A DNA stretch of 64,000 nucleotides. Source: Monocercomonoides exilis PA203. Its lineage: Eukaryota > Protista > Preaxostyla. The notes below the pieces were generated by a model. It made no database searches. It saw only the letters and a list, made by a program, of their open reading frames with translations, and was not told where the DNA came from. Made by a program: the position numbers and the translations under genes. This document shows, piece by piece, positions 19,224-63,779 of this stretch (positions are counted from its first letter, which is position 1; every line of letters starts with the position of its first letter). Where the stretch lies: positions 1,364,001 to 1,428,000 of the forward strand of contig LSRY02000019.1 of the NCBI GenBank assembly GCA_001643675.2, read 5' to 3'.

Positions 19224-22113
19224 TTAAAGTCCCATAAGTAATCCAGTTCCGTAAAACACTGTGTTGATTATGATATATGAAACTATTGTAACAGTTCCTC
19301 CGTACTTAAAGAAGTCTCCAGTAGTCAAATATGGCTGATGATCGTCATCTTCCACTCCATAACAGCACATATTCGGAAATGACGCAACAGCAAGAAGCAT
19401 TGGAGGAGACACATGCAGCGCACAAGCAAAAAGCTATACGAATTTCAAAAAAAAGAATGAAAAAAGTTTAATAGAAGTAAAACAAAGATAAAATTCGAAT
19501 AATAAAAATATAATTTCATACAATCAACTCCACATGTGCAGCAGAATTTGCTAGAACTGAATTGACAATAGGAATTAGAACAATCGCTGCGACAGTGTGC
19601 GAAACAAAAATAGAGACAAAAGCCACAATCGCAGTGAGAATAAGAAGTTGCACAAAAGCATGCAGCTGACTGAACGTTGGACCGAACAGCTCAGAAATAA
19701 GTTGCAGAAGCTTCGAGTCTTTGATGGCTTCTCCCAAGGCACCTCCGCCCATCACCAGGAGGATCATATTCCATGGGAGTTCGGTAATGTCTGTCCGAGG
19801 GACCAAGTTAAACCCGAAGAAAATACAAAACGGAATCAACCCCACAATTGCCTCATTTCCCAAGAACGGTGCATACGGAATGATAAACCAGAACACTGTG
19901 GTGATGAGTGAAACGACAGCCACAAATATCATTTTCCATGTCCACGGGTTGGGTGTGGTTGGTGGTGAGAAGGGAACCTCCTTCACATCGATCTTGTAGA
20001 AGCACCACAAAAAGAAGAAGCATACGAGCGTAGACACAACTGTAACAGGAAGTGCACCTACTGTCCTAAAAATGCAAAAAAGTATTCAGAATTCATCATT
20101 TTTAAAATCGTCGGAGATAATATTCATTAAAAAAAATATTTAAAGAAAATACAAAAATAGTCAAAAACTCCAAACCATGTTCCAAATGATGTTTTCGCAT
20201 GATAGTTCATAGCAGCTTGAATGGCTTCAAGACCAACCATACTTTGAGGCGAAGCCAGTGGAGTGGCCATACCAGCCAAGTTGCCTGTCATTGCAATCGT
20301 CATAAGCAGCATCTTTGAGAAGCCGCCTCGCACAGGAACTTCCCGCAACACAGGAAGCACAAGCGAAATCACAAGGACAGTAGAAGAGATGTTGGAGATG
20401 ACCATCGTCAGCAAGTATTGAAGTGCTGTTGCAATTAGCAAGAACACCACAGGCTTCCTGGCAACACGGAATTGAAGCAGGCCGTATGCGATTTTCTTGT
20501 CTAATCCCGTGTGCCGCATAGCGAGTGCGATAGAATATCCTCCAATAGCCAAATACGGTGTGTCTGAAATTGTCGATGTAACCAGCTGCTTTGCACCATC
20601 ATGAAAGGTCTTTCCTACAATGTTCAAAAATGTTGCTAGAATTGGAATAAACAATGCAACAACATGTGCTGGAAGCGCATCAAATGCCCACAATATTGAA
20701 GCCCACACGAGAAGCCCCAGGCAGCGCATCTGCCTCGCAATAGAAGATGGCCACGGTACCACACCCATTGCAATGAGCACAATGAAAGAGATGATCACCC
20801 AGTGCATCTTGACCTTGAAGTAGTATGACACCTCACCTTTTGATGTTGAAGACGACGATGACGAATCTGTCGCAACTCCAGACGGAGTGATGCCTGATCG
20901 ACCGCTCTCTTCAGTTTGTTGCGTGGCGTTCCCATGCTCGTCTATCCCAGCTGTCACGGCCCCCAGGTTCACTTGCGCCTTCTGCTGATGGGTAATATAC
21001 TCACCCAAAATTGTGTTCTTCTTCCAAGCAATTTGAGCTTCTGTTGAACTTTTGATATCGTTCATCAGTTCAAGTTGTCTCCGCAGTTGAATCTCTTCTG
21101 CACCTTCTACTGCAACGCTAGCTGAACCCTGTGCCTCCAATGCAAGAAACTTACCCAAAGAAAAAGTGGCCACATATAAATTTTGCACCTGCTCCACAAG
21201 CATCGAAGCAGATGGGAGACTATCGAACATCTCCTTTGTCTCTTGCTCCATGACAGCTTTTTCTTCTCCTACAAGTGTTTGTGGATCCCCTGTTTCTTCA
21301 TCATTCACTGAAACCATCTTCGCCAATTTCTTCAGGATTTTTCGAAAACCTTCTTTATTCACCTTTATAAAATTGTCCATTTCGGAACAATCGACGGAAA
21401 GATCAAGAAATTCTCTTTTGAGCTCAAACATTGCACCTTTTGTTGCAGGACAACTTTCGGATTGCTTTTGCAACTCTGTTATTCTCCCTAACATTGCAGA
21501 AATTCCATCACGAGCGAAAGAGTGCACTTTTTCCAATTCAGTATCATAGCATTTTTTCCACATTTCAACTCCTTTTACAATTTGTTGGCGATCTTCTTCA
21601 GTCAAATTTGAAGCCATTATTCCTTCGTTTAGTTCCCTGTTTCTTTTAACATCACTTGTAGAAAAAGAAGAGCGTTCAATTGGAGGTGAAATAGATGATG
21701 AAGATTCTTCCTCAAGAGCAGGAGATGGCGCACGTAAAATTGATGCTGTCTCCGTTGAATCGGAAAAGCCAGCCTTTTTAGGGAAACCTTTTTTCGATTC
21801 AACCATTTCAATTTCTTTTTTCTTCATGTGCGGAGATGTTGGAGCTTGATCGGAAGAGGGTGGAGTAAAAAACATAGAATTATTTCCAACAAGTGAGGGT
21901 CTTGGTTTCTGTCCATCTGGCTTGACTTTAACTGTAACAAAACGGGAATTAAGATATGATCTAAACATGAGTTTCATTTGCTTTTTAAGATCTCGATACT
22001 AAAAGATAAATAAAAATAATTGAAGAAAAATCATTACAACTTAACAATACATTTATATAATGCTTCCTCCACCGATCCACGGCAATAAATTGAAGTTGTC
22101 TGCTAAACTTCAT
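19224..22113 (-). CDS. SPX-domain low-affinity phosphate transporter (Pho87/Pho90/Pho91-like, SLC13/DASS), about 3 introns
   Basis: Exon 1 MKFSRQLQFIAVDRWRKHYIN spliced to YRDLKKQ (SPX start); ELEKVHSF and NFIKVNKEGFRKILKK (SPX); multi-TM region ISNISSTVL, GNLAGMATPLASPQS, LPWNMILLVMGGGALG, FVSHTVAAIVLIPI, VASFPN, YLTTGDFFKYG. Confidence 0.92.
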
Positions 22114-26773: not shown

Positions 26774-29700
26774 ATGATTCTTTCTCCATGTTATCTGCTG
26801 ATTGTTTCCTTTTTGGCAGCGAGTGTTTCATGTGAGCTCAAAGGCGATATGCTTCTTGATGGAGAAGATGCGAAGGGAAAAATCAAAGAGAGACAGGAAG
26901 GAAAAGAAAACACTTGGTGGGAAGAAAAGGGCGTGGAATGCTGGAAAAAGGAGGGAAAAGAGAAATGGCTTCAAACAGGAAGTGTGCGTTTCATAAGCAG
27001 GGATCTGGATGGAGTTTGGGTGAAGAGTGTGAATGCGTCTGTTTGTCTGAAGCGGCTGAAGATATTTGTGAGTGAAAACGTGGAAGTGATGAATGTGGGC
27101 CTTGGAAGTTTGGGGGAGATGAGCGAGTGCTGTGTGGTTGCAGAAAGTGGTGTGATGGGAAGTGTTGCAGGATCAGATGGTGGAATGGTTGTGTTGAGGA
27201 ATGTGAGTGTGGAAGGTGCGAAGAAAGGGATTGTTTTCGTTGGGAGTTTGGTGAGGGTTGGGAGATGTGATGGGAGTGACTGTGGATGTGTGGATTTGAG
27301 AGAAGGGGTTGTGAGGGATGTGAAGGTGATGATGGAAGGAACCCTCGTTGCCAGTTGCAGCGGAATACACACAGTTATGGAACAGATGGCGTTTGTGAAT
27401 GTGAGCAGAGCGGCGATGAAGAGGCAGATGACAGGAGAAGAGAAGAGAGAGAAGTGGAAGAAAGAAGAAAGGAAAAGTCAGCGTTTGGGGAATGGGAATG
27501 GAGAAAAGATGATTGGGTGTGTTGTGGAAGGAGTGGAATGGCCTTTGGATGGAGGCATTGTTTATGGAGCGAGCAGAAGCGGGCAGTACTTGTGGTGTGA
27601 AAACACAACAATGGAGAGGTGCGAAAGAAATGGAGTGAAGAGCAATTATGAAGAGGAGAAGAACATGGAAAGAAAAACAGTGAGCAGTGGAGACGAAACA
27701 TTTGTTGATTGCTCATTTTTTGAAACCTCAGCGACAAGTAGTCAATCAAATTCAGGAGGAGCGATCTTGTTCACATCAACTGGAAAATTGACTGTTGTGA
27801 GAACATCGTTTGAGAAATGTCATGCAGTTTATTGCGGAGGAGCAATATCCAGTCGCTTTGACGAATATTGCAAGATGGAAGTGGAAGAGTGCAACTTCAC
27901 ACATTGTTGGAGTGTGGCATCCGGAGGAGCGATTGATGCTCGGTATGTGAGTGAAGGGAGATGGGTAAAATGTCGATATGTTGAGGGAAACGTAACTCAC
28001 ATGGGAGGAGGATTGTTTTTGGAATTTGAATCAACAAGCAATATTGTCAATGAAAATGAGTTTGTGGGAAATAAAAAAATTGGGCAAACATATTACGGAG
28101 GGGCAGGATTAGTAATTCATGAAAACAGCTTTGCCTTTGTGACAGACTGTATTTTTATGAATGGGCACAGTGAAAAAAATGGGGGAGGGATATGTTGGGA
28201 TAACAAAACTGGACAAGCTGAATCAAAAGTGTTGTTTTGCTTCTTTGGAAACAACAGTGCAGCAAATGGAGGATCGGATGTGTACATCTGTGATGGATGG
28301 ACAAGCATTGATGAAAGCAGTTTTGTGTTGTGTCGGACGATATCTGAAGGCGAGGAAATGAGAGTTGTGAAAGGAAGCACATGTTACAGCGGTTGGGTGT
28401 TGAAAGGATATTTCAGCAAGATCCACATTGATGGAGAGGAAGGGATCGACCATTTGGGATGCGGGTCTGGTGGAGTGGAAGGAGAAGAGCGGAAGGGGAG
28501 GGGATGCAAAAGGATTGGGTATTTCAGAATGGTTGCAGATTTGACAAGAGAAGTGAATGTTATTGTGGGGAGAGGAAGATGCAAAGAGGAGAAAGTGGAG
28601 ATTGGAGACTTGTCTGTGAGTTTGAAGGGGGTGGGGAAGGAGGAGACATCCGTTGTTTTGAGAGGGAGGAGCGAAGAGGAAGAGGTGGTGCTGATTGGGA
28701 GTGGGAGCGGGATGTTTGAGGGGATGAGTTTTGCTCGAGTGGGGAAGGGGAAGAGGAGGAAGGAGGAGTTTGTTGTTGGAAAGAATGGAGGAGAGCTGCA
28801 GTTGGTGAAGTGCCAAGTGAGAGAGGCGAGTGCAGAGGAAAAGCTAAATGAAGAAGAAGGAGAAGGGGAAGGAGAAAGAAGAGAGGGAGAAGGGGAAGCA
28901 TTTTTGAGTGGGTTTGTATTGATTGTTGGAGGGAGAGTGGTGATGGAGTCAGTTGAGATGAGTGGGATGAGGGAGGATGGGTGTGGAGTGGTGGAGATGG
29001 GAGGGGTGAACGGAGAGTGGGTGGAGATGAAGAACACAGTGGTGAAAGAGGTTGTGCGGGAGAGAGGGAATGGGAGTGTTGTGGGAGGGAGAGTGGGAGA
29101 AGGAGGAGGAGTGGTGGTGGAGGGAGGGACATATCGGAATTGTGGGTGCTTGTCGGGGAGCGGGGGTTGGATGTGGATTGGTGTTGGGGAAGGAGGGGTT
29201 GTGTCGATAGGCAACACCACAGGCAGCGAGGGAGGAGAAAGCGAGAGTGCTGTGAGTGTGGAGGGATGCAGCTGTGGAGGAGAAGGAGAAGGAGAAGGGT
29301 TTGGAGGAGGGCTGTTTGTGGAAGTGGGGAAGGGGTGGAGAGGGTTAGAGATTATGAATGCGATATTCAGTGGATGTGTGGTTGGGGAAGGGAAAGAAGA
29401 GCTTGGAAGGGGAGGAGGGTTGTATATTGATGTTGTAGATGGTGGAGAAGGAGGGAAAGCGTTAGATGGAGTGGATGTGTTCCAGATTGGAAAAGTGAGA
29501 TTTGAGGGAAACCGTGGATGGGAAGGGAGAGATGTGTTTGTCAGGTGCAGTGTTCTTGGAGAAGTGGCAGACAGAGCTCATTTGGGGGATTGGTTTGTTC
29601 CATCAGAGGAGGAAAGAGAAGAGGATTGGAAGGAAGAGGAAGGGAAATGGGGAGGAGTGTGGGGTTGTGAGCGAAGCACCGCAGGAGATGAATTCGGGAT

Positions 29701-32700
29701 TCCGATTGTGGTGTATTTGTGGGAAGGAGCGAGAGAGCGGATGCATGTGGATGGGGTTGGAGGAGGGGATTTTGGGAGGTGTGGATTTGCAGTTGCACCA
29801 TGTGAGACAATCGCACAAGCAATCAGACTGCATGCAGCATTGATGAAGGAGCAAGGGATGGAAGAGATCCGAGTGAGCCATTCCTCTTTGATTGAAGAGG
29901 CGATGGTTCTGAGTGAAAATGAGATGCCAAATGGATTGGTTATCGTTGGTGATGAAGAAGGAAGCGAAGTGGCGTTTGGAGGAGAAAAGAGGAAACAGGA
30001 TTGTGGAGAAGGAATAAAGTGGAGAACAAAAGTGAATGAAATTGAAGAGAAGATAGGTTTTGTCAGGTCAAGTGTTCCATTTTCGTTGACAAACATCAAG
30101 ATTATGTTTGGAGAAGGGATGCTGGGATACCGATCATTTGTTCTGATGGAGGATGAGAAGTGTGTTTTGATGATGAAAGGATGCAGAATGGAGGGGAGAG
30201 GCGGAGAAGAAGGGGGAGAGATTGGATTTGTGTTTGTTGAAGGGATGATGGGAGAGCTGAAGGTTGAGGAATGTGTGTTCAAGGACTGTCTGTTGGGAAG
30301 GGAGCATTTGGTGGTGGGTGAGGGAATGAAGAGTGTGGTGATAAATGGAACACTGTTCTCTGGAATAGAAATGGGCAGCTCCAGTCTGATTGGGATATGT
30401 GGAGGAAGTGTTGGCGGAGCAAAGGGAAATGAAAGAAATGAAGAGAGAAAGAGGTTGTGGAGAGAGAATGGAGAAGAGAAGGCAAGAGTGAAAGTGTGGA
30501 TGGAGAAGTCGAACTTCACAAACATAACCTCGAGAGGCGAGAGCGGGGCGGTGATTGGAAGCAGAACAGGAGAAGTGATGGGGGTGGTGGATGTGAGAAT
30601 TGAGGGGTGTGAAATGAGAGTGTGCGTGAATGAAGGGTCTGAGGAAGGAGGAGGGGTGAAGTGGCGAGGAGGGTGGGAAGAGAATGGAGAAGGGCTGGTG
30701 ATGGAGAGCTGCACAGTTGCAGGATGCGAATGCTGTCGAACAAGTGGAAGGGGAGGGGGAATAATGCTGGACTGTGTTGGAAGGGCTGAGGGGAAAGAAG
30801 GAAATGGAGCAAATGGGATTGGAGGGTTTGCGATGAGGGGCATCTCATTCCTGTGGAATGAAGCATTTGTTGGGAAAGACATGTTTGTGAGGTGCTTGTC
30901 AATTGAGGAGCAGATGAAGCGGAGTGTGCTTGAGCTTGACACAGAGCAGGATTCTCTGTTGCGGAGGGATGCAGCGAATGCGAGCGATGAGGAAGAGAAG
31001 GATGTGGATCTGCTGGAGTGGCTGAGGGGGTATCAGTCTGTGTGGGTGTATGTTGCTGAGTCTGGGAAGGATGGGAGGCTGTGTGGATCAGATAGTGAGG
31101 CGTGTCGGAGTGTTTCAGGTGGGATGAGGCACATGGAAAGAGGAGCAGGGAGCACGATGTGGATTGTGGAGAAAGGGGTTGTGATGGAGAAGACGACTGT
31201 GGGAGATGTGTGCATCCGATCTTGGAAGCGGGGAAAGAAGTGCATTGTGAGTTTGGATAAGGTGGATGAAGCAAAAGTGCAGGAGGAGGGGGTTGTTTGC
31301 TTTGTGAATGAGAGCGAGGTGGTGGACTGTGTGTTTGAAATCGGGAAGCATTTTGAAGGGAGAGATGGAAGCGTGCTTCTTCAAGTGAATGGAACACTTG
31401 TGATGACAGGGTGCACAGTGAGGTTTGCTGAGCAAAGGGGAGTCCTGATGTGTGATGTGATGAGGATATGTGGAGGAGTGCTTGAGATGCGTGGGTGTGT
31501 GGTGGAGCAAATGGAGTGTGGGAAGGGTGTGCTGGTGTTTGGGAGTGGATGTAATGGAGTGTTGCGGGAGTGTATGATTGGGGATGTGGAGAGTGAGGGA
31601 GATGTTGCGAGGGTGGATGGTGGAGGGAGAGTGGAGATGAAGGAGATTGTCATGAAAGATGTGAGATTGCGGGGAGGAGCGAGCTGTGTGAGTGTGACAG
31701 GAAATGGGGCATTGAATGGAGAAGGAGAAGGAGGGAAGATGAGGATGTGGTGTGTGGAGCTTGTGAATGTGAGTGTTTCGAAGAGTGAGGGAAGTGTGCT
31801 ACATGGAGAAGGGCGAGGAGCAAAGACAGAGTGTGTGAACTGTTCGTTTGGGAGATGGGGGAGGAGGAGTGGAGAAGGAAGTGCAGTGCGTGTGAAAGGA
31901 GGATGTGAGCTTGAGATGGAAGCATGCATGGTGGATGGGACAGGGCATGAGGAGAAGGATGAAAGAGAGGAGTGGATGAATGTAGGAGGAGAAGGAGAAG
32001 GAAATGAGAAAGGGGTGTGCAGGTGGAATGAGTCAGCTGTGGAGGTGAGAAAGAGCGCAGGGGTTGTGATGGAGACGAGGATTGCGAACTGTGGTGAGGG
32101 AGGGATGAGCTTCAGTGGAGGGAGTGTGAAGATTGCGAAGAGTGAGTTTGAAGGGAATGGGGAAGGAGTTGCGAAGTATCCGTCTGCTCGGAGAAACATG
32201 TGGTGCAGAGAGGGAGGGAAGGTTGAAGTGGTGAGCCTTCGCGGGGGAGATGGGATGGAGAAGGGATCATCTATGTGGATGGTGAATGAAGGGTGTGAGA
32301 TGGGAGGAATTCTGGCAGCGAGAGAGTCTGTGCTGTTCATTCCGCAAGTAGAGAAAGTGGAGGTTGAGGAAGTTGGGGAGAGAGAGAAAGTGGTGTTTGT
32401 GGGGGAGTTGTTGCTTCCATGCAACTTATCATTCAAAGTGGAGAAGAGAATGGGTGAAGAAGCTCATGTGGAGAAAGGGGTGTTTGAGGAAGAGGGATAT
32501 ATTTCTGAGGGGATGGTGTTAGGGTGGACAAGCACTGCAGGAATCGGAAATGAAAACGAAAATGCAGAAGTGAGTGTGTGCATCCTGTTTGGGAATGCTG
32601 AATCTCCTTCTTCAACAAAGGAATTTATTTTGAAGAACGGAAGCGAGATTGCGCAAAAAGAAGATGAAAGAATCGTTGAAAAAGGAAAAGAAGGAAAATC

Positions 32701-34039
32701 ATATTGGCTATTGATTGTTTGCGTTGTGGTTGTTGTAATACTGCTTGTGGTCATAATTGTTCTGGTTGTTCGGTGGAAGAAAGTGAAGGAAAGAAAAGAG
32801 GAATTGGAAGAGATTGTGAATGACAACATCAGAAAGGATCCAAAAGCATTTGAGATGGTGACGATGGAGATGTCTCCAGAGGAGCAGTGGAGGAGAGCAG
32901 AAAGGGAGGCAGAGAAGAAGAATGAAGAGAGGATTAAAAAAAGGGTGTATGCGAAAAGCTTGGGACATTCCGAATCATCAGAGCATCTTCTGTCAGAGAG
33001 TGGATCAACCGAATACATTCTGGGGAGAGATTCAGACAAGATTCCTGAATGGATGTTGGAGAAGGTTGATGATGAGGAAGAGACAAGAAAGAGAACACCA
33101 TCTCCATCCATCTCATCCACTTCAACAACAGACACTTCAGACACTGAATCCACTTTTGTTCGAAGGGAAGATCTGTGTCCAACCACTTCGTCAATGTCGA
33201 ATCTGGTGGATGCAATGGCATGTTCGTCTCCCCATGAGAAGCTGATTGTGGATTTGAGGGATTCGCTGTTCATGCTGCTGCATGGAAGAAATGAGAAGAA
33301 AGAGATGGCGATTGGCACTCTCCAAGAAAGAGAGATGACAGCTGCCCAAATTCTGTTCTGGGTGGCTAATCTTGCGCTTCACTCCTTTGAAGACGAGGAA
33401 GATGAACTCTCTTCGCTGGCCAATCTCAGCCCTCACATTGTCCTGTTCTCTGAGCACATGGTCATCTGCATTGCACTTCATTCCGATTGCTCTTCTTCAG
33501 ACTCAGATTCTTCATCCATCTCTTCATCAACTGTTGTCACATCAACATCTGATTGCTCCACTGTGAACAGAAATGGGAAAGACTCGCCACCGCCATCATC
33601 AGCATTTGAGGATGAGGATGACAATAGAAAAGAGTGTATGAGGTGGAAGGCACCTGAGATGCTGATCAACAAAAAGATGGGAGCAACAAAGGAATCAGTT
33701 GTGTTCTCGATCGGGATAATGCTGTGGGAGTGTCTGACGCTGGAGATCCCGTTTGGGGAGTATGAGGCAGAGGTGGCGGGACAGAAGATTGTGAATGGAG
33801 AACGTCCTGATCAAGAAAGAGTTGGTAGGAGCAAGTGGAAGGAAGCTGTGAAGGCATGTGTGTCAAGCAGAGCATGCGATCGGCCGACTCTGATGAATGT
33901 GAAGCGAGCATGCGTTGAGCATTTTCCAGCGAATGCAGCAATATTGACTGTGTCTGATGCAATTGGGGTGAATATAAGTGGAGGTACAGCTGATGAAGAA
34001 GAAAGCGAAGATGAGATTGGAGAAAGATCGATGGAATAG
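26774..34039 (+). CDS. Giant intronless type I membrane protein (2421 aa), paralog of 8156-16438: beta-helix/PMP-like ectodomain, TM, degenerate tyrosine-kinase-like domain
   Basis: Signal peptide MILSPCYLLIVSFLAASVSC; SGGAILF, CGGAIS, SGGAID motifs; TM and cytoplasmic tail nearly identical to the 2760 aa protein; Gly/Glu/Val-rich ectodomain. Confidence 0.85.
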   Translation: MILSPCYLLIVSFLAASVSCELKGDMLLDGEDAKGKIKERQEGKENTWWEEKGVECWKKEGKEKWLQTGSVRFISRDLDGVWVKSVNASVCLKRLKIFVSENVEVMNVGLGSLGEMSECCVVAESGVMGSVAGSDGGMVVLRNVSVEGAKKGIVFVGSLVRVGRCDGSDCGCVDLREGVVRDVKVMMEGTLVASCSGIHTVMEQMAFVNVSRAAMKRQMTGEEKREKWKKEERKSQRLGNGNGEKMIGCVVEGVEWPLDGGIVYGASRSGQYLWCENTTMERCERNGVKSNYEEEKNMERKTVSSGDETFVDCSFFETSATSSQSNSGGAILFTSTGKLTVVRTSFEKCHAVYCGGAISSRFDEYCKMEVEECNFTHCWSVASGGAIDARYVSEGRWVKCRYVEGNVTHMGGGLFLEFESTSNIVNENEFVGNKKIGQTYYGGAGLVIHENSFAFVTDCIFMNGHSEKNGGGICWDNKTGQAESKVLFCFFGNNSAANGGSDVYICDGWTSIDESSFVLCRTISEGEEMRVVKGSTCYSGWVLKGYFSKIHIDGEEGIDHLGCGSGGVEGEERKGRGCKRIGYFRMVADLTREVNVIVGRGRCKEEKVEIGDLSVSLKGVGKEETSVVLRGRSEEEEVVLIGSGSGMFEGMSFARVGKGKRRKEEFVVGKNGGELQLVKCQVREASAEEKLNEEEGEGEGERREGEGEAFLSGFVLIVGGRVVMESVEMSGMREDGCGVVEMGGVNGEWVEMKNTVVKEVVRERGNGSVVGGRVGEGGGVVVEGGTYRNCGCLSGSGGWMWIGVGEGGVVSIGNTTGSEGGESESAVSVEGCSCGGEGEGEGFGGGLFVEVGKGWRGLEIMNAIFSGCVVGEGKEELGRGGGLYIDVVDGGEGGKALDGVDVFQIGKVRFEGNRGWEGRDVFVRCSVLGEVADRAHLGDWFVPSEEEREEDWKEEEGKWGGVWGCERSTAGDEFGIPIVVYLWEGARERMHVDGVGGGDFGRCGFAVAPCETIAQAIRLHAALMKEQGMEEIRVSHSSLIEEAMVLSENEMPNGLVIVGDEEGSEVAFGGEKRKQDCGEGIKWRTKVNEIEEKIGFVRSSVPFSLTNIKIMFGEGMLGYRSFVLMEDEKCVLMMKGCRMEGRGGEEGGEIGFVFVEGMMGELKVEECVFKDCLLGREHLVVGEGMKSVVINGTLFSGIEMGSSSLIGICGGSVGGAKGNERNEERKRLWRENGEEKARVKVWMEKSNFTNITSRGESGAVIGSRTGEVMGVVDVRIEGCEMRVCVNEGSEEGGGVKWRGGWEENGEGLVMESCTVAGCECCRTSGRGGGIMLDCVGRAEGKEGNGANGIGGFAMRGISFLWNEAFVGKDMFVRCLSIEEQMKRSVLELDTEQDSLLRRDAANASDEEEKDVDLLEWLRGYQSVWVYVAESGKDGRLCGSDSEACRSVSGGMRHMERGAGSTMWIVEKGVVMEKTTVGDVCIRSWKRGKKCIVSLDKVDEAKVQEEGVVCFVNESEVVDCVFEIGKHFEGRDGSVLLQVNGTLVMTGCTVRFAEQRGVLMCDVMRICGGVLEMRGCVVEQMECGKGVLVFGSGCNGVLRECMIGDVESEGDVARVDGGGRVEMKEIVMKDVRLRGGASCVSVTGNGALNGEGEGGKMRMWCVELVNVSVSKSEGSVLHGEGRGAKTECVNCSFGRWGRRSGEGSAVRVKGGCELEMEACMVDGTGHEEKDEREEWMNVGGEGEGNEKGVCRWNESAVEVRKSAGVVMETRIANCGEGGMSFSGGSVKIAKSEFEGNGEGVAKYPSARRNMWCREGGKVEVVSLRGGDGMEKGSSMWMVNEGCEMGGILAARESVLFIPQVEKVEVEEVGEREKVVFVGELLLPCNLSFKVEKRMGEEAHVEKGVFEEEGYISEGMVLGWTSTAGIGNENENAEVSVCILFGNAESPSSTKEFILKNGSEIAQKEDERIVEKGKEGKSYWLLIVCVVVVVILLVVIIVLVVRWKKVKERKEELEEIVNDNIRKDPKAFEMVTMEMSPEEQWRRAEREAEKKNEERIKKRVYAKSLGHSESSEHLLSESGSTEYILGRDSDKIPEWMLEKVDDEEETRKRTPSPSISSTSTTDTSDTESTFVRREDLCPTTSSMSNLVDAMACSSPHEKLIVDLRDSLFMLLHGRNEKKEMAIGTLQEREMTAAQILFWVANLALHSFEDEEDELSSLANLSPHIVLFSEHMVICIALHSDCSSSDSDSSSISSSTVVTSTSDCSTVNRNGKDSPPPSSAFEDEDDNRKECMRWKAPEMLINKKMGATKESVVFSIGIMLWECLTLEIPFGEYEAEVAGQKIVNGERPDQERVGRSKWKEAVKACVSSRACDRPTLMNVKRACVEHFPANAAILTVSDAIGVNISGGTADEEESEDEIGERSME
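32626..33798 (+). repeat. Copy B of the shared TM + cytoplasmic cassette
   Basis: Direct sequence match to 14983-16155. Confidence 0.95.
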
Positions 34040-37307: not shown

Positions 37308-39419
37308 ATGGAATTTATTATTTTACTCCTGATTCATTTTTGCCTTTCAATAAATCAGAAAGATCTCCTGCTTTCATTTTACACAGCCACTGAAGGAGAA
37401 AAATGGTTTGACCATTCAGGATGGGCGACTGAGGAAGATTACTGTACTTGGAAGGGGATAACTTGTGATGAGAATAAATTTGTAACTGGAATTGCTCTTC
37501 AAGGAAACAATCTTGGGGGAACACTACCCTCAAATTTTGGCTATTTATCAAGCATTTCAAGTTTGGATTTGAGTCATAACCATATTTCTGGTCCTCTTCC
37601 AATCTCGATGGTCAACATGAAAAGCTTAGCTGCAATGTGTGCAATTTTTTTTTTTGAAAATTCGAATTATTTGAATATGCAACCTTTTTTGTTTGCTTTA
37701 GAGGACTGAGACAAAATAATTTTTCTGGACCATTTCCTCTTCATTTAAGAGAAGCAAAAAATCTTATGTTTGCCCATCTTGACTTCAACAATTTTGAAGG
37801 TCCTCTTCCAGAAGGAATCTTGCATATGAAGCAATTAAAAGTTCTGGGATTAACAAATAATAAATTGAAGGGTCCAATCCCCGCAACTATCAGTGAACTT
37901 ACAGGGCTTACTGTTCTTGGTCTTGGAGGAAATGAATTGACGGGTAAAATTCCAATTCAACTTCGACGATTAACACAATTGGTGAGTTTGGACCTATCAA
38001 ACAACAAACTCAGTGGAACAATTCCGGATATTTTCAAGTCGATGCACAATCTTGCTGATTTGAGTTTGTTCAGCAACCAACTGGAAGGAGAGATTCCAGA
38101 ATCCATAACAAATTTGCCAAAGTTATCAGTTTTGTCAGTGAATGACAACAAATTTACAAAGATACCTTCAACAATAGGGGCATCAAAGTCATTGTTTCTT
38201 ATTGATGCAAAAAACAACAAAATTGATATAGAACCTCCACAGTCGCTGAGAGACGATAAAACATCTGTGGTCATTGCAGATCTCTCAGGAAATCCATGGA
38301 AGTGCAACGGACAACTTGATGAACATCTTAAGTGGACTGGTGCAGAATGTCACAATAATGCTCAAAATGGAAAGATCAGAATGGAAACGAAGAACGTTAC
38401 CGAAAAAATACATGTGACTCGTAACGTTTCTTCAGTTAAGAACGATGATGCGAAAGTTCAAGTTGAATATTGGGGGATTACAAAATGCCCTGATCTTATT
38501 AAAATGGAAAATGTTTGCTAACTTATGATTCCATTTGAAGAGATAAATAATTTGAAAATTTATTTTAATCAAATTTATGTCTTTTCTTATTTCACTGCAT
38601 TTCACCGTGACATTTATATGAAATAGACTTTGTTTGATCTCTCTCCAGAGATTCAAGACATTTATGAGATTCGTCCTTACATGCTGTCTCTGCCAGCCCC
38701 AGCCTACCGCACAAAGCGATGGAGCATGCACGGTCAGAGCGAGGTGTATGGCAACATCTTGTATTTGTGTGCTTACGAGACAGAAGAGCCAGAGAACCCG
38801 GGAGATCCAAAGACGAAATGGAAGGAATTTGCAAAATGTGAAGGAGAGAAAAAGGACGAAATCCCATCTCGTGCTAAAGAATGTACTGAAAAGTGTGATT
38901 TTATTATATATTTGTATTTTTTAAAAAGCATAACTGTGATTTTTGCTGAAAATTGTGCATTATTTCATTATATAAATCTGTAAATTTTAAACATCAATAT
39001 ATTTATATATATATTGAAAAAAAGGGCTGCATTGGATTGGGACAAGATGAAGAAGTGTGTTGTTGAAAGAGGCGCAACTCTCCTTGAAGAGTCTCAGAAT
39101 AAAGCTGACACAGCTGATTATCATGCTGTGTGGTCTCCGACTCTGTACTTCGACAAGAACTTTAAGGTTTGCAAAATTTTGAGTTTTGGCTGGAATATAT
39201 TATTTCTCTCTCTCTTTCTTTCTCTTGCAATCCTTTTAAAATAATCAATGTATATATGCACCTAAATATTTATTGTTATCTACTTATCATTTTTCACATC
39301 AGTGCTTGTACGATTTTAAAGGCATGTGTGATTGCCAAGATAACAAGAATATGATGGAGAAACACATATGCGATTCTTACAAAGGAGAAAACAAGCCAGC
39401 TTACTGCAACAATGTCTAA
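37308..39419 (+). CDS. Secreted plant-type LRR protein (LRRNT_2 cap) fused to a C-terminal GILT-like thiol-reductase domain, about 4 introns
   Basis: Signal peptide; LL.FY.AT.G..W....GW....YCTWKGITC cap; repeats of LxxLxLxxNxLxGxIP; then VQVEYWGITKCPDL...SMHGQSEVYGNILYLC...AKEC...MKKCVVERGATLL...WSPTLYF...HICDSYKGENKPAYC, matching the GILT layout. Stop TAA at 39417-39419. Confidence 0.85.
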
Positions 39420-41702: not shown

Positions 41703-44700
41703 ATGACTGATTTAAAAGCTTCAGAACAAAATGTTGAAAGCAGTCACATCAATGAAAATTCAGTCATAAATTCACAGGCTCATTTTATGGAGGAAAATGT
41801 TGGACTTACAACACAGCGAAAAACAGAAACGTTTATACTTGATTCGATTATATCTTGTGAAGAAGACAGAAACACTGAATTTAAGGCAGTTCAAGTCGCT
41901 AAGAAATTAATTGAATATATATTGAAATTGGCTACAGAATATATGAATGCGTTTTTAAACACTGATGGAGGATCTATTTATTTCGGTATAAATCAAATCA
42001 CCTTCTTATTTTTGATAATATTTGGATTTTCTTAATAAATTTCAGGAGTCGAAGACGATGGTGCTATAAAAGGAATTGAGCTAAACAGAAAAGATCGCGA
42101 TCAACTACGCCAAGGGATTGATCAAATAATCAATCGTTATCGCCCACAAGTCGACCCTTCTCTTTACCGTCTAGATTTTATTTCAGTTATAGATCCAAAA
42201 TCTGGTGTGCAGTTAATCCTTTCAAGTGCTTAACTTGTAACTATAAAATTATTCATGCTTCAGAGCACCAAAATTTGAATTTGTGTGTTGTCAGAATAAC
42301 CGTACAAAAGGGAACTGCCCCAGTATACTTTGTTGGTGGAGGAAAATTTAGTGCTTATCTTCGAAGAGACGGGGGGACCAAAAAGATGGAGCCATCACTG
42401 ATCGAAGAACGACTTCGTATAGCTTCTTATGAACAGAACATGACAGAAATGTTTGCATACAACGTAGCAGAGCCATACACAAGCTTCCAGCAGCAATTTA
42501 ACGATGCTGATAACTGGAAAGATGGGGATGGAGAGTATGATGCAAACCCAAACACACCAGAAATTGGTAGCCCATCGTCTTTTTCTCTTGCAGATGTGGC
42601 ACAATCTGCAGGGCAAAGTAGAATGATGGGGCTGGTGCCTTTGTCTTCTGCATCTGCGTCTGCATCTTCTTCGTTTGCTCCGCCTGTTGCGAGTTCTTAC
42701 TCCTCGTCTGGAATTTCTCCTTCCATGTTGAACATGACGTCCTCGTCTTTCTCTGCACACACGATGTTCCATCAGAGCAGGCCGCGGGAGTTTATCGGGC
42801 GGCAGATGGAAATCAAGCTCATTTCAGCATTCATTTCGCAGACAGCTGGCGAGTGCCGAGTGATTACCATCTTCGGCGGCCTGGCGATGGGGAAATCTGC
42901 ACTGGCGAGGCAGCTCTTCTTCCTGTTTGGAGGAAAAGACCCATCGAGAGGCATAATAATTGACTTAAAATCGGGCGAGGATGGGAAGAAGACTTCGCCT
43001 GTGGATGCGATGAGGGCGGTGATTGTGGAGAGGATTGAGGGAGTGGCTGCACTGACTCAATGGTCCGTTTTTATTTTATTCATTTGAATTAATCATTTAT
43101 TTTTTATTGAATTTTTCACTTGCTATTTTACAATGTAATGCATGCAATAATTCTTTATTTTTTAATTAAACAATTTTCCATTTTAACTTATAACATTTCA
43201 GTGCCGATTCGTATGTGAAGTCGTTGTATCAGTCGCTGTTCAACCAGCAGGCCTCTCCGCACAACCACACTCCCTTTAGCGCCCAGTCTCGCTCTCCTTC
43301 CTCCTCAAGTCTCTCTTCTCTCACCAGCCCTGCTCTTCCTCTTTCCCTTCCTCCTTCTCTTCCCCTTCCCCTCCCTCCGCCTCCGCTTCCACAGACATCG
43401 TCATTTGTATGCCCTTCATCGCCAAGAGACTCTCTTTCATTCGGCCCCATCCCACTAAACGCTCAGAGCTCAAACACGACAAATGCTCCATCATCTCAAA
43501 ACAATCTTTCTGGTGCGCTTAATCTCTCCCACATTCATCTGCCGCCTCCTCCCTCACACACATCAGCCTCTCCAATGCCTATTCCTCTTCCACTCTCACA
43601 GTCGTCTTCTCCTCAGTCTCATTCATATCATCCATCTTCTTCATCAAATTCTTCATTTCACATGTCTGAAAATTCATCCTCATCTGAACTACAATCCAAC
43701 ACATCAAACACACAAATCAACCAAATCGATTCCAACAGCGCTGTTTCATCACAGCACACTCAATTCACTCCTCCCGTCACACCGCCTCTTCCTCCCTCGT
43801 CCTCTCTTTCGCCCTCGCTGCATCCGCTTTCTCTTTCACCCACAGTGCGAACCAGAAAGCAGCAGATGCTGCCTTCTTTCCTCACATCGCCTGTGGTCTG
43901 CGCACAGAACACGACGCCTGGTGCTTCTCAAACACAGCCAAACAGCCAGCTGTCGTCTTCGGCTGAGCCGTCGCTGCATCTGAGGGAAGCCATACAGCTG
44001 CAGCTGAAAGTCCCTCATTTGACACACAACTCAAGTCTGCCGCCACCTCCGCCGCTGTCTCCAAGCTGTGTGCACCCATCGAATGAGCCATTTGCACTCG
44101 ACAGCAATTCGAATCAGCAGTCTCAGCAGTCTCAACAGTCTCAGCAACAACAACAACAGCTGCAGCAGCATATTCATTCACTTCCACATTCTCTTTCTCT
44201 GTCTCCGAGGCATTCTATGCTTTCGCTCAGCCTTGAGCCTCTTTCTCCTCTGCCTTCTTCTTCGTTCTTCCCTTCTTCCATTTCTCCTTCATCCTCAGAT
44301 TCGTCCTCATCAAAACGAACAAGATCCATTTCTGCATCATCATCTTCTTCTCCTTCTGCGTCCTCATCATCATCTTGTTCTTCCTCAAATGGCAGCTCAT
44401 CCAACGCCTTCTCTGCCTCTCCTGTGTCTTCTGTGCGTGTCCTCTCTCGCCCCACATCACCAACACCCACGCCAACCACGCCCACATCTTCATCCATCGG
44501 CCATTCGCTTCTCCCGTCGCATGTGCTGCTGATTGAGAACGCATCTCATTTTGAGCAGATCCACCCGCTCATTCCGAAGCAGTCTGACACCGTTGTGTTT
44601 GTCACGTCACACAGACACATCCACATCGACACGCCTATCAGATTGTATGAAATGCGCCTGGCTCCGCTGAAACGAAGCGATAGCATATCACTTTTAACAT

Positions 44701-47700
44701 CTTCAATGGGTATGAATTTGTTAAGTTTTAGCATCTTTTTATAAATTTATTTATTTATTCATTTGACAAATAATCTATCATGAATTTGTTATCAAAAATA
44801 TCATTTTTGCTCTCTTTAAAACATCCATCAATAATTTCCCCTCTTTCTCAGATCTGTCACACAGCCCCATCACGCGCCAAGAGGCCGACATGCTGGCTGC
44901 TGTGTGTGGCGATCTCCCCCACTCTCTCATCTCAGCAGCTGCTCTTCTGCGCCGCCGGCCGAACCTGTCTGTGGAGTCGCTCTGTTCGCAGCTGGCTGCC
45001 CATTCGCGTGTGCCGCTGCACATCTCCTCGTTCCGGGCGCTGCTGAGCGGGGCGAGTGAGAAGATGCCGCTGAAAGAGGAGCCGCTGCGGGACCTGATGT
45101 GCCTGGCGCCGTGCCGCGGGTCGTTCCGGATGGACGAGGCGGAGGTGCTGCTACGGAAGAACGAGGAGTGGACGAGCCAGATCATCGGCTATCTACACGA
45201 GCACTCCCTCGTCGAGTTCGAGCCTATGACGCGGAGGTGCCACGTGAACACGCTCGTGCGGAGCTATCTGCTGCGAGAAGCACAGGAAAGAGAGGGCGTG
45301 CTGGAGGATATTATGAGCCGGTTCATAACATGCTACACGAACTATCTCAGAGCGATCGTGAATGGGACGGTGAAGGAGAAGGAGAAAGAGAAGGAGAGAG
45401 AAAGAGAAGAACGAAGGCAGTGGGTGGAGATGCAGACGGCTGGCGACTCGGCTACCGAGAAAGGAGGAGAGTCACAAACAGGCGGAGACACGCCAGCGTC
45501 GCAGCTGGCGAGTCCTTCTTCGCAATCTGCTTCTGTTTCTTCTTCGTCTCCATCGACTCCTGCTGAACTGGCTTCTCCATCTCCACTTGCGGCCTCTGCT
45601 TCAGCTTCATCATCATCATCATCTTCTTCTTCTCAACCTCCACATTCTCCTTCAGCTTCAACGCCTTCACATCAGTTTGCAAGCACTCCTTCGATGAAGA
45701 GGGAAAAGAAGATTGCTCTTCTCGAGGCAGACATGCACAACTTTGAGGAGGTCGTGACGAGGCTGGAAAAGGGTTATGCGCCTTATTTCCGTCCGTATGT
45801 TTATTCATTTATAAAATTATATTCGATAATTATGAATTAATATTCAATATTTCTTTCTTTCTTTCTTTCTTTCTTGTTATTTGCCTTAAAATTCTTATCT
45901 ATTGCAACTTTATTCTCAGCTCCTACAAGAAGCTGCAAGTGGTTGCAGCTCTTCTGGAGCCCTTTGCGGATGTTCTGCGTCCGTGTGTTGTGGAGTCGAT
46001 CAAGCTGTTCTTCAAGTCAAGCAGCAGCCAAAATGATCAGTCTTCTGTCGCCCCGTCAATGTCACCACCACCTCCACCGTCGATGCTGCTGATGAGAAGC
46101 AGGCACAAAAACGAGGCACACACAGACGATCTCTCTTTCTCGAACTACACTGAAGATTTGACTGGCCCGGGGACTTCAAAAGTTCAGCTGCCGAGCGGCT
46201 TCTGCAGCATTGCTGAGTCTCACAGTGAAGACGGAGGAGGAAAAGAGAACTCGTCTTGCGAAGAGGAAGACGCAGACAGCGACAGCTGCACAGCGTGTGT
46301 CAGCACAAGCTATTCAGATGCAGACAGCAGCGAGGATGATAATGATGATCATGACGATGAGGAGGATGATGAGGACGAAGAAAGAGCAAAAGATGAAGAT
46401 GGAAATGAAGTACAAACGAAAAGAGTAGCAATTCCACGGCCAGCACAACCGAAAGTGTTTGCTGCACCTGCTCAGAGAAATGCAAAAGCAGGCAAAAAAA
46501 GGAAAGAAAACCAAAACATCCCTGCAAATGCGGATGCTGATGACAAGAATCCTTCCAGCAAATGGAAGTGGAGAAAAGCAAAAGGCACATCTTCACGACG
46601 TCCGAAGCGTAAGGACTCTATCTCAGGAACTCTGCCACCGCCCATCCCGATCTTTCAGGAATCCACTTCATCCAAAACGTTTTCGGAAGGTGGGCTGTCT
46701 TTTTATGATTACGACAGAACCGCCCCTTCACACGAACGCTTTTCAGCACGTTCTGTTTCTCCTTCCACTTCTGTGTTTTCGTCTTCCATTTCGCCATCAT
46801 CGCTTTCTCCTTCTTTCTATTCTTCTTATATGAAATATCCTTCGACATCATCTTCTTCTGATTCTTCATCGTCTTTCTCATCATCGTCATCATCGTCGTC
46901 GTCCGTTCCTCCTTCTGATTATCAACCGCCTTTTGTTTCGTGCTCTGTAGACTCTTCCTTTCTTCCGTCTGTGCAGAATGCGCTTATCAGCGACCAGCTC
47001 TCGTCTGCAGCGTCTGGAATACACAACGTGTTTTCTGTAACCGCCGTGCATCCGCTTTCTCCTCAAAAGGCTTCAGCTGGCTCGTCTTCCTCTCTTTCTT
47101 CCTCTGTCTCGGCGGAAGAGCCTGCCTCTTCTCCTTCTCCTTCTCCTTCTCACTCTCCGTCTCCGGCTGTCTCTTCGCAGCACATTCCGACTCCTGTTGT
47201 GCCAGCATTATCGCGTACTTCTCCTATCCAGAAGGCCTCCTTCGCTTCGCTTCCTTCGCAGGGAAGCAACAGAGAGGCTGAGCGGCAAGGCAGCGCACAT
47301 GAAGGCAGTAAAAGAGGGCAGAGCAAACAGTCGATGAACTCGAGACTGAAGGAAAAGGCGCTGGAACGGATCAGAAAACTGATTAGATTGCGAGAAGAGG
47401 TGAATTCGAAGCGTATGAGGTACGAAAAAGAGAGAGAAGAAACAGAAAAAGATGGGAGAAAGAGCAAGCAAAAAGAGAGGAGTAAGAAGGCAGATCCATT
47501 TCATTATTTAGGCCAATTAAAAGAGAGGAAGAAGGGTAAGAGGAGCAGCGAAGATCCGCGAAGCGAAGAAGCATATGAGGCAATCGCAAGAAAATACTCA
47601 ACTGAATCTGTTCCTTCGAAATATGCTTCTTCAGCAACCTCTCTCGATGGAGCTGCAAACACAGACTCTGAAAGCAATGCGCCTCAGACAAACGAACCGA

Positions 47701-47795
47701 AAATGCATGAGAAAGACGCATTGGAACTTGCTCCTTCATCGAGATTTGACGACTCTGCTGTTGGTGCAGCTCCGATTATCATCCCGAAGCACTGA
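41703..47795 (+). CDS. Schlafen (AlbA_2, SLFNL1-like) domain + NB-ARC/STAND NTPase + winged helix, with long low-complexity regions; about 5 introns
   Basis: EEDRNTEFK...YMNAFLNTDGGSIYF|GVEDDGAIKGI...RPQVDP...AYLRRDGG (Schlafen); EFIGRQME...IFGGLAMGKSALARQL (Walker A); VLLIENAS...LIP...VFVTSHR; LAPLKRSDSISLL; LAAVCGDLPHSLISAAALLRRRP; SF....AEVLL...LHEHSLVEF...VNTLVRSY. Confidence 0.88.
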
Positions 47796-61763: not shown

Positions 61764-63779
61764 ATGCCAAAGATTAAGCAGGTTCCTTTCAAAAAAATGA
61801 AGAAGGATCCAGGATTGCCAAATCTATTAAAGCAAAAAGAGCAGTTATCAAGACAAATGGAAAATCATAAAAAAATACAACAACAACGTGATGGCTCTTA
61901 TTCTGATGAAATACATTTTGGAGAAAAACATAAAGGAAAGACTTTAAATTATAATATCATTGCAAAAGATGCAAAAAAGAAGCAAAGTTTGTATCATGAT
62001 AAAATGCGCGAAGGAGTTCTGAAGGATTTAGCAGAAAATACGGAAAAAGTTTCATCAAAAGGTTTATTTACTTTTTGTTTTTTGAAATCTTGCATCAACG
62101 AAAATGAATTTACTCAGCGGTACAAATTAATAGAAGACAATTTTTTTCGATGCTTAACAAGGTTGTAGATGCATCTGATATAATTTTGGAAGTTATTGAT
62201 GCAAGAGATCCTTCTGGAACTCGTTGCTCGACTCTGGAGCGATCTGCTTTGGCAAAAGGAAAACAAGTGGTGATTGTTTTAAATAAAATAGGTAAACTTA
62301 ATTTTATACACATGCTTTCTTCAGTCTTTTTTGATGGAATAAACTGGTAAAATTTATTTAGATCTTGTGCCGAGAGATGTTGTGGATGGATGGGTTACTT
62401 ATCTTAATCAATTTTTTCCAACGGTTGCATTCAAGGCAGTCGTTAGTTCATCTGCAACTGGGATTATCCAGTACTCGTCTCCGACTGGGCCTGCGTCTGT
62501 CGAGGTCGAGAATGATGGGTCAATAACTGCTGTTCAATCAAGTGCATATACTACGACAACTTCAGAAATAACTTCTGCAATAAGAATTTCTCATGGAGGT
62601 TTTTATTCTTTGAAAAAGATTTTTTTTTCAATATTTCGATATGCTTATGTAATCACAGAAATTTGGAAATTTCTAAATATATAATTTCTTGTTTAATAGT
62701 CTTAATGCAAATGATGTATTCTTTTTTCACTCTCTTTTGTTTTATTGTTTATTGTTTATTTTTTCTTTTCTTTTCTTTCTCATTTTTATTCCTTATTTTT
62801 CTTTCTTTCTCTCTTTTTTTTGTAAATAATTCACCAAATCTGAATTCACTCCAACAACATCATTCAACCAGACACGTATGGAGGTGATCAGCTGATGCGT
62901 GTATGCAAATCACTTTCTGTGTCTTCGAAGGGGCATGCAATGAAGACGACAGTGGGTGTGGTGGGTTACCCCAACGTGGGAAAGTCCTCGTTGATCAACT
63001 CGCTGAAGCGCCGCCACGCTGTGCAGACCTCGTCGCACGCTGGCTGCACACGCGGCCTTCAGACGGTGGAGATTGAGACAAAGCTGTCGGTGATCGACTC
63101 GCCTGGCGTCGTTATGGACTGGACAGACGAGGCCAACGCGGTGCTGCGGGCAGCGATGCGCGTGGAGGATGTGAAGGACCCACACTCAGCTGTCCTTTCG
63201 CTGGTTATTCGCTCTGACATCAACGTGCTGCTGTCTCTGTACTCGCTGGACCCTACTGCTTTTGCCAAAGTCATCCCTCCTCGCGAGCCTGGTGCTGGCT
63301 TCTCTTCTTCGACTTCTCCTTCTTTTTCCTCTTCCTCTTCCGCTTTTCCTTTGTCGGACGAAGCGCTCTCTCGATACTCTCCGTTCGTTGAGGAGTTCCT
63401 GAAGGCGGTTGCGCAGCGCCATGGCAAGCTTTTGAAGAGCGGCATTCCGAACTACGACGAAGGCGCGCGGATTGTGCTCCGCGACTGGGGGGCAGGCAGA
63501 ATCCCGTTCTGGACGCCAGCCCCGCCAGCGCCGCCGAAGGCAGCTGTTGGCGGGACGGGGGCAGCGACGGTGGTGGATGAGTTTGCAGCTCCGTTTGCGA
63601 TTGAGGGCATGGGAGAGTTTTCGGGCACTGGGAAGGAAGGAGATGAAGGCAGTGAGGCGGATGGAGGGATGGGGGGCAAAGGAGATATGGATGTGGAGGA
63701 GATGGACGAAGGACACAGCAGTGGAGTTGCTGCTGCTATTCAGAGCAATGTCACAGATCCCAGTTACCATATGTGCTGA
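61764..63779 (+). CDS. GNL3: Nucleostemin/GNL3/Nug1-family circularly permuted GTPase (60S ribosome biogenesis), about 3 introns
   Basis: N-terminal KKDPGLPNL..KEQL; NKVVDASDIILEVIDARDPSGTRC; VLNKI|DLVP (G4); VAFKA (G5); VGYPNVGKSSLINSLKR (G1); GCTR (G2); DSPG (G3); ARIVLRDW..GRIPFWT.PP. Confidence 0.92.

Follow-up and report, generated by a model that had tools for sequence, protein, structure and literature searches.

A window of 64,000 nucleotides from the oxymonad Monocercomonoides exilis, a flagellate of the gut that has no mitochondria (contig C13:1364001-1428000, in an assembly of 82.3 Mb and 101 contigs) carries, at 41703-47795 of its forward strand, the six-exon gene MONOS_2961, in which an AlbA_2 nuclease domain of the Schlafen/SAMD9 type is followed by a predicted NB-ARC-type STAND ATPase. 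The product is on record as "putative ATP-binding protein" (KAH7824777.1 / XP_067728635.1, 1827 residues, called P0001 below). It was retrieved by searching 1.84 billion representative proteins with a paralogue from contig C47 as the query, and its sequence is that of the window gene's own product, with exon junctions identical to those of the six-exon model built from the DNA. AlbA_2-NB-ARC proteins form a protist family so far undescribed in the literature searched, and MONOS_2961 is one of its two members in M. exilis.

Read from the first ATG, the coding gene has 1855 codons; read from 41787, the ATG of the annotation, it has 1827. It ends with the TGA at 47793-47795. Exon 1 (41703-41985) encodes the N-terminus and the first third of AlbA_2, including the codons of E26 (41862-41864) and E31 (41877-41879; P0001 numbering throughout). 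After intron 1 (41986-42045, 60 nt), exon 2 (42046-42204) provides the middle of the domain, with the motif GVEDDG, the putative catalytic D70 at 42054-42056 and the motif RPQVDP. Intron 2 (42205-42263, 59 nt) separates it from exon 3 (42264-43062), which encodes the end of AlbA_2 (to about 42388), a linker of about 130 residues and the start of NB-ARC with the Walker A motif GGLAMGKS at 42875-42898. Behind intron 3 (43063-43201, 139 nt), exon 4 (43202-44709) contains a disordered insert rich in Ser, Pro and Gln (about 43263-44504), the Walker B motif LLIENA (44526-44543) and the sensor-1 motif VTSHR (44601-44615). Intron 4 (44710-44851, 142 nt) leads to exon 5 (44852-45794), with the GLPL-like motif CGDLP (44905-44919), helical domain 1, the winged helix with VNT in place of MHD (45244-45252) and the first helices of a C-terminal helical domain, together with a second insert of low complexity. 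Finally, intron 5 (45795-45919, 125 nt) precedes exon 6 (45920-47795), in which the last conserved helices (to about 46004) give way to a low-complexity tail of about 600 residues with YSTESVPS near its end. The first-pass annotation, made by a model from the letters, had correctly located EEDRNTEFK (41859-41885) and GGLAMGKS; the end that it gave for the gene, 46030, falls inside exon 6.

All five introns are of the GT..AG type with consistent phases in the model drawn from the DNA alone. RNA contigs from four runs of one study, mapped without mismatches, have exactly five joints in the gene, at which 60, 59, 139, 142 and 125 bases are skipped. The joint of intron 1 is found in runs X1 and X2 and that of intron 2 in the RNA contigs, while those of introns 3, 4 and 5 are found in all four runs, with sides of 128-255 nt at intron 3. 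The proposal that nuclease and ATPase belong to one intron-containing gene is thus confirmed by the transcripts, and exon 3 encodes both the end of AlbA_2 and the P-loop. The GC-rich low-complexity stretch at 43201-44539 is crossed by RNA contigs without splicing and is therefore coding sequence, not an intron. RNA coverage begins only near 41890, downstream of both candidate start codons (41703 and 41787). The reading frame is intact across 5.5 kb, and MONOS_2961 is a single expressed, spliced six-exon gene.

For the domain searches the exons were run individually, while the whole-protein work was done on P0001, so that the 28 residues upstream of 41787 were searched only within exon 1. The nuclease domain is recognised by Pfam SLFN_AlbA_2 (PF04326) over profile positions 1-117 of 118, with 55.3 bits and an E value of 1.2e-14 against a gathering cut-off of 25.3 bits. 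Taken separately, exon 1 gives 17.2 bits (profile 1-37) and exon 2 gives 15.2 bits (profile 39-80), in the correct order. Residues 1-190 were modelled with AlphaFold from a family alignment of 26 members, and the mean predicted local distance difference test (pLDDT) is 93.3. With this model Foldseek finds SLFN12, 13, 5, 11 and 14 at E values of 4e-10 to 1e-8 and probability 1.00, each match leaving some of the SLFN nuclease core, which is larger, uncovered (template modelling (TM) score normalised by the target 0.14-0.40). SLFNL1, with which the first-pass annotation had compared motifs downstream of the acidic ones, did not appear among the matches listed in the searches. The SAMD9 tRNase domain is covered over its full length (9o0d; TM 0.66 by the model and 0.59 by the target, probability 1.00), and 7ksp is also matched.

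The three acidic positions pointed out in the first-pass annotation are borne out by a profile alignment with rat SLFN13 (5yd0). E26 and E31 align with both glutamates of its SES..IEFK motif and D70 with the second aspartate of GVDD, residues which we take to be the catalytic E205/E210/D248. In the family alignment E26 is kept in 23 of 26 members, E31 in 24, D70 in 21 and the lysine of EFK in 23. With the predicted Glu/Glu/Asp triad intact, the AlbA_2 domain of MONOS_2961 is apparently active. Pfam finds only one AlbA_2 domain and no helicase family on P0001, and the family profile significantly matches only one stretch per SLFN chain (about residues 170-310). The nuclease domain of MONOS_2961 is thus a single lobe, as in SAMD9, and not a two-lobed SLFN core. 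A complex prediction for an AlbA_2 homodimer scored 0.17, with the mark at 0.32, and counts neither for nor against dimerisation.

The ATPase is more difficult to recognise by sequence. The Pfam NB-ARC profile (PF00931, cut-off 23.5 bits) has no match on P0001 or on individual exons, and the only Pfam signal for this part is AAA_16 at 17.6-22.3 bits, under its own cut-off. Of the expected pair of profiles, AlbA_2 is above its cut-off, and NB-ARC is matched in relatives that lack the large insert: P0003 (36.5 bits), P0006 (34.8 bits) and P0005 (24.5 bits). In P0001 about 415 disordered residues (407-820) separate Walker B from the first part of the nucleotide-binding domain. In a model of residues 285-1245 the order is confined to 292-406 and 821-1094, where most ten-residue blocks have a pLDDT above 90, and the disorder to this insert and a second one at 1096-1159. 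Foldseek places the ordered part closest to the NB-ARCs of plant NLRs (WRR4A, Roq1, NRC3, RPP1, ZAR1), Apaf-1 and CED-4, with E values of 1e-6 to 1e-4 over 223-268 aligned columns at only 8-17% sequence identity. The top 31 matches are all plant NLR NB-ARCs, Apaf-1 or CED-4, except for one archaeal STAND-TPR protein at rank 21; MalT and NACHT proteins stand far lower, NACHT (NLRP14) appearing only at rank 48.

Walker A, Walker B, sensor-1 and GLPL-like motifs can all be located. In Walker A, GGLAMGKS, the G and K are invariant across all 29 aligned sequences. Walker B is LLIEN, with Glu for Asp, so that the position stays acidic, and the pattern hhhhEN is found in nearly all eukaryotic family members, whereas bacterial relatives have hhhhDN or DD. 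Sensor 1 is VTSHR in P0001 and TSR in the family. At the MHD position P0001 has VNT, the C47 paralogue and Blattamonas have LNS, and most of the family has QND; the MHD histidine is absent in P0001, and LHD is confined to bacterial-type members and a few others. The model thus makes the MONOS_2961 ATPase an NB-ARC-type STAND module, with nucleotide-binding domain, helical domain and winged helix, split by an insert, in line with the NB-ARC and winged helix first read from the letters. The Blattamonas relative has an insert at the same place in its ATPase domain.

Downstream of the winged helix, the helices shared with Blattamonas are 38% identical over about 100 residues, and the disordered tail of about 600 residues contains no Pfam domain. 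No LRR, TPR or WD40 repeats were found by Pfam on exons 5-6 or on P0001:1095-1827, and no LRR remnant was found downstream of the MONOS_2961 stop within the window or beside the C47 paralogue. The Blattamonas nauphoetae relative P0002 (KAK2954749.1, "NLR Family CARD Domain Containing protein") has been modelled with an RNI-type LRR end. We rejected this LRR tail as part of the AlbA_2-NB-ARC protein, as the public model (JARBJD010000074.1, L011:7015-9223) appears to merge two genes. The M. exilis orthologue of the LRR part is a separate small RNI-type LRR gene with its own start on contig C32 (L010:5364-6448, reverse strand), directly downstream of a P-type ATPase gene, with 48-61% identity from P0002 residue 1171 on, and Blattamonas has an in-frame ATG at the corresponding start. 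Moreover, reading through the P0002 donor site at 7809 adds 18 codons up to a stop at 7863, and these include the YSTESVPS shared with the C-terminal end of MONOS_2961. The LRR tail being a separate gene, the oxymonad AlbA_2-NB-ARC proteins are therefore without a repeat sensor, and the description of the protein as "NLR-like" was overstated. In the window itself classical LRR_1/LRR_8 repeats occur in an open frame of 251 codons at 37766-38521 on the forward strand, about 3 kb upstream of MONOS_2961, and the RNA contigs of the region contain no link between the two.

The genome of M. exilis has one paralogue, on contig C47 (L002:5598-8720, reverse strand), a single open frame of 1040 residues with the same architecture and about 35% identity; no further AlbA_2-NB-ARC copy and no other Pfam NB-ARC was found in the genome. 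The nuclease triad of the paralogue is lost, with T, L and K standing where the catalytic residues would be. It is without introns 1-4 and ends at the position of MONOS_2961 intron 5, followed only by AT-rich DNA (16-39% GC) with no C-terminal exon. A weak IS1595/ISXO2 transposase-like fragment is found nearby (L002:4191-4550, 19.2 bits, under cut-off).

AlbA_2 and the NB-ARC module are both present in 47 of the representatives fetched, and at least 45 clusters have this architecture. They come from Preaxostyla (Blattamonas, Paratrimastix), other metamonads (Dysnectes, Spironucleus, Barthelona and two "Eukaryota sp." isolates), Amoebozoa (Mastigamoeba, Mastigella, Pelomyxa, Cavostelium, Stereomyxa, Endostelium, Arcella), the ichthyosporean Creolimax and the apusomonad Thecamonas, while two metagenomic members lie on contigs with eukaryotic neighbour genes. 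The family was not seen in plants, fungi or animals in these searches. The architecture, which the first-pass annotation did not know from a unicellular eukaryote, is thus in databases from at least four supergroup-level eukaryotic lineages. We found no paper on it in protists in the full-text literature searched, which is not proof of novelty. Most members have about 650-700 residues and a C-terminus consisting of the helical domain only, and some have TPR arrays. Four proteins, P0011, P0203, P0204 and P0025, are of the rare AlbA_2-NB-ARC-TPR kind, and one contig with P0011 has small, tightly packed, bacterial-looking genes; by the gene content of its contig alone, P0011 is bacterial-like. 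A locus search from P0011 for a bacterial genome with the fused architecture gave one actinobacterial NB-ARC-TPR locus, without AlbA_2. In Paratrimastix pyriformis, protein P0004 (KAJ4455189.1, 2478 aa) joins a GCN2-like kinase (RWD, kinase, HisRS-like) to the AlbA_2-NB-ARC module; either two genes have again been merged in the model, or an uncharged-tRNA sensor is really fused to a tRNA-nuclease-type module.

The history of the ATPase was studied with IQ-TREE on 51 rows and 348 columns, with no root inferred and two long rows (Barthelona and P0014). The tree splits 37 eukaryotic-type from 14 bacterial-type rows (99/96). P0011 and P0025 fall on the bacterial side, beside Anaerolineae-like NB-ARC-TPR proteins (95/93). 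On the eukaryotic side oxymonads (100/99), Preaxostyla (97/94), a Dysnectes-Spironucleus group (99/96) and Archamoebae (100/98) are recovered, and all metamonad rows come together at 90/88 (unstarred). This pattern fits an old, largely vertical descent in eukaryotes with a bacterial sister group and is at odds with a recent transfer into M. exilis. Since the tree largely follows taxonomy, any bacterial origin would be ancient. The first suggestion, that the gene was horizontally acquired and then intronised, fails as a recent transfer, because the eukaryotic rows stay together and their inner groups follow taxonomy; it may stand at best for an ancient event.

Several systems already known combine the same two elements. 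SAMD9 and SAMD9L carry AlbA_2 and an Apaf-1-like STAND NTPase together with SIR2-like, TPR and OB domains (PMC5445408), and their AlbA_2 cuts tRNA-Phe and shuts translation down (PMC12680541). Bacterial Avs9 shares this design and kills E. coli through the acidic site of its AlbA_2, bacterial AlbA_2 genes cluster with defence systems, and in protozoa the SAMD9 survey that reports this found no analogues (PMC12680541). Bacterial Schlafens that stand alone cut tRNA upon phage infection (PMC13056530), and in bNACHT34 a Schlafen RNase effector sits on a NACHT switch. The first-pass annotation stated that animal Schlafens carry an SF1 helicase and not NB-ARC; animals do pair AlbA_2 with a STAND ATPase in SAMD9/9L, and bacteria have such pairs as well.

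MONOS_2961 resembles SAMD9/9L in having a single N-terminal AlbA_2 followed by an Apaf-1-like STAND P-loop NTPase, and in the full-length match of its AlbA_2 model to the SAMD9 tRNase domain (profile E value 1e-6). However, it has no SAM, SIR2-like, TPR or OB-fold domain, keeping only AlbA_2 and the NTPase of the SAMD9 core, and its ATPase is of the bacterial AfsR/NB-ARC-TPR type; it is not a member of the SAMD9/9L family. With Avs9 and bNACHT34 it shares the placing of a Schlafen-type effector nuclease on the N-terminal side of a STAND switch, but the STAND clade is SAMD9-like in Avs9 and NACHT in bNACHT34, whereas MONOS_2961 has NB-ARC and is a eukaryotic gene with introns. Outside the family, the ATPase comes nearest to NB-ARC-TPR and AfsR/SARP proteins of bacteria (26-33% identity to family member P0003 of Cavostelium), which agrees with the prokaryotic AfsR-like character noticed at first sight in the motifs. 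In P0011, too, AlbA_2 precedes NB-ARC, and its AlbA_2 is 40% identical to that of MONOS_2961. These bacterial proteins differ in their TPR arrays and frequent BTAD/HTH domains, none of which is found in MONOS_2961, and in a Walker B with D-N or D-D and an MHD motif LHD, where MONOS_2961 has E-N and VNT. The NB-ARCs of plant NLRs, Apaf-1 and CED-4 are the closest folds to the ATPase model and have the same order of nucleotide-binding, helical and winged-helix domains; unlike them, MONOS_2961 has no coiled-coil (CC), TIR or CARD effector, no LRR or WD40 sensor and no MHD histidine, and has 415 residues inserted ahead of Walker B. As for the mammalian Schlafens (SLFN5, 11, 12, 13, 14), the AlbA_2 fold and the E/E/D residues align with their catalytic part, around residues 170-310 of the solved chains. 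The SLFN core is two-lobed, and some Schlafens add a C-terminal helicase, whereas MONOS_2961 has one lobe and an NB-ARC ATPase.

The evidence on the function of MONOS_2961 is computational throughout. By analogy with SAMD9, Avs9 and the Schlafens, we think that the likeliest function is that of a nucleotide-gated defence RNase, activated by oligomerisation, which would arrest translation, and we give this a probability of roughly one half. In the resting state the ADP-bound ATPase would hold the protein monomeric, with the lone AlbA_2 inactive. A trigger, perhaps a foreign molecule or a stress signal, might be read by the C-terminal helical domain, the tail or a partner protein, and would lead to nucleotide exchange and oligomerisation. 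The gathered AlbA_2 domains could then form an active RNase that cleaves tRNA or rRNA, and the stop of translation would serve as a cell-autonomous defence or suicide response. The pairings of AlbA_2 with a STAND ATPase that have been studied, SAMD9/9L and Avs9 (PMC12680541) and bNACHT34, are all defensive.

Several observations weigh against a defence RNase. No sensor repeats are recognisable by Pfam on the exons or P0001. The PADLOC models have no match on the ATPase or nuclease parts when the exons and the paralogue are scanned, their sole match being a weak one of TmtA on exon 5, probably driven by low complexity. Two copies in the genome and an ATPase tree that follows taxonomy are more like a conserved cellular gene than a fast-diversifying family of receptors. 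The Asn at the MHD position (VNT) and a Walker B with E-N and not D-D mean that nucleotide handling may differ from that of classical NB-ARCs, and the 415-residue insert is located inside the ATPase domain itself. In addition, RNase activity, trigger and oligomer are all inferred by analogy, and we know of no viruses of oxymonads.

The main alternative, which we consider possible but clearly not the favourite, is that MONOS_2961 is a conserved housekeeping or stress enzyme acting on RNA, for example in tRNA or rRNA turnover or ribosome quality control, its nuclease gated by the ATPase with no role in defence. The low number of genes (two), the absence of a variable repeat sensor and a family tree that broadly follows organismal groups, suggesting long vertical inheritance, all speak for such an enzyme. 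So do the closest AlbA_2 relatives outside the STAND family, among the matches listed, which are cold-shock-domain plus AlbA_2 proteins of about 40% identity (P0326-P0329, 372-395 aa, metagenomic or bacterial), named RNA-binding by their source. Nevertheless, the characterised AlbA_2 nucleases and AlbA_2-STAND fusions are all defensive, and the clustering of bacterial AlbA_2 genes with defence systems points the same way (PMC12680541). The family is also patchy, not being seen here in plants, fungi or animals, and the triad is lost in some members, including the M. exilis paralogue, which would be unusual for an essential enzyme.

A further possibility, to which we attach a low probability, is a nucleic-acid-binding regulator, in which AlbA_2 would bind DNA or RNA without cutting it and NB-ARC would work in the control of gene expression as in bacterial AfsR/SARP. 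The closest ATPase relatives are indeed AfsR/SARP and NB-ARC-TPR proteins, with database names (automatic ones) such as "transcriptional regulator, SARP family", and the AlbA_2 of SAMD9 also binds double-stranded nucleic acid (PDB 7ksp). Mere binding would not need the E/E/D residues and the EFK lysine, however, and these are kept in most members; nor does Pfam find a BTAD or a SARP-type winged-helix DNA-binding domain on P0001.

It appears very improbable that MONOS_2961 has lost its function and is decaying, with its low-complexity inserts a sign of relaxed constraint. About 55% of the protein is predicted to be disordered or of low complexity, and the paralogue is without catalytic residues and seemingly without the last exon. 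Against this, MONOS_2961 has an intact frame, it is transcribed and its RNA is spliced correctly, none of the catalytic or nucleotide-binding motifs has been lost, the ordered parts are modelled at a pLDDT above 90, and the Blattamonas insert is at the same ATPase position. Finally, a recent bacterial transfer or a bacterial contamination of the assembly, for which the bacterial type of the ATPase motifs and the existence of the bacterial-like P0011 could be adduced, is refuted by the removal of five spliceosomal introns in RNA and by the nesting of the gene within oxymonads and Preaxostyla in the tree, besides its eukaryotic flanking genes, its large contig in an 82 Mb assembly and an identity to P0011 of only about 22-40%.

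The genes around MONOS_2961 are ordinary eukaryotic ones, namely a Thg1-like tRNA-His guanylyltransferase C-domain (window 3979-4917), an SPX plus Na/sulfate-symporter-type transporter (20127-21977, reverse strand) and an MMR_HSR1 GTPase (62895-63779). A very strong and sustained GC skew of 0.57-0.72 is seen at 27000-33000, inside a giant open frame (26774-34039).

Returning to the defence RNase, a bolder version of it would make the fusion an ancient eukaryotic defence module, derived a single time from a bacterial AlbA_2-NB-ARC-TPR protein, before Metamonada and Amorphea separated, with the catalytically intact and the dead-nuclease paralogues of oxymonads co-assembling as a pair. Such a pair would recall the sensor-helper pairs of NLRs, or mammalian Schlafens with their one active and one degenerate lobe. 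We regard this version as rather unlikely. If it were true, it would add a third independent immunity lineage of Schlafen nuclease and STAND ATPase beside SAMD9/9L and Avs9, and the protozoan gap reported by the SAMD9 survey would be filled.

The concept of joining AlbA_2 to a STAND ATPase is not new, having lately come to light as a defence design common to animals (SAMD9/9L) and bacteria (Avs9, bNACHT34); what is new here is an NB-ARC-based version in protists, not found in the literature searched. The MONOS_2961 family represents a third version of the Schlafen-nuclease/STAND design, built on an ATPase of the AfsR/NB-ARC-TPR type and spread over metamonads, amoebozoans, an ichthyosporean and an apusomonad, and it bears on the entry of NB-ARC switches into eukaryotes. 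As a housekeeping RNase, it would provide the first case of AlbA_2 and a STAND ATPase paired outside immunity. If it is defensive, it would offer a testable handle on cell-autonomous immunity in protists, and some hosts of the family, such as Spironucleus and Creolimax, are transfectable.

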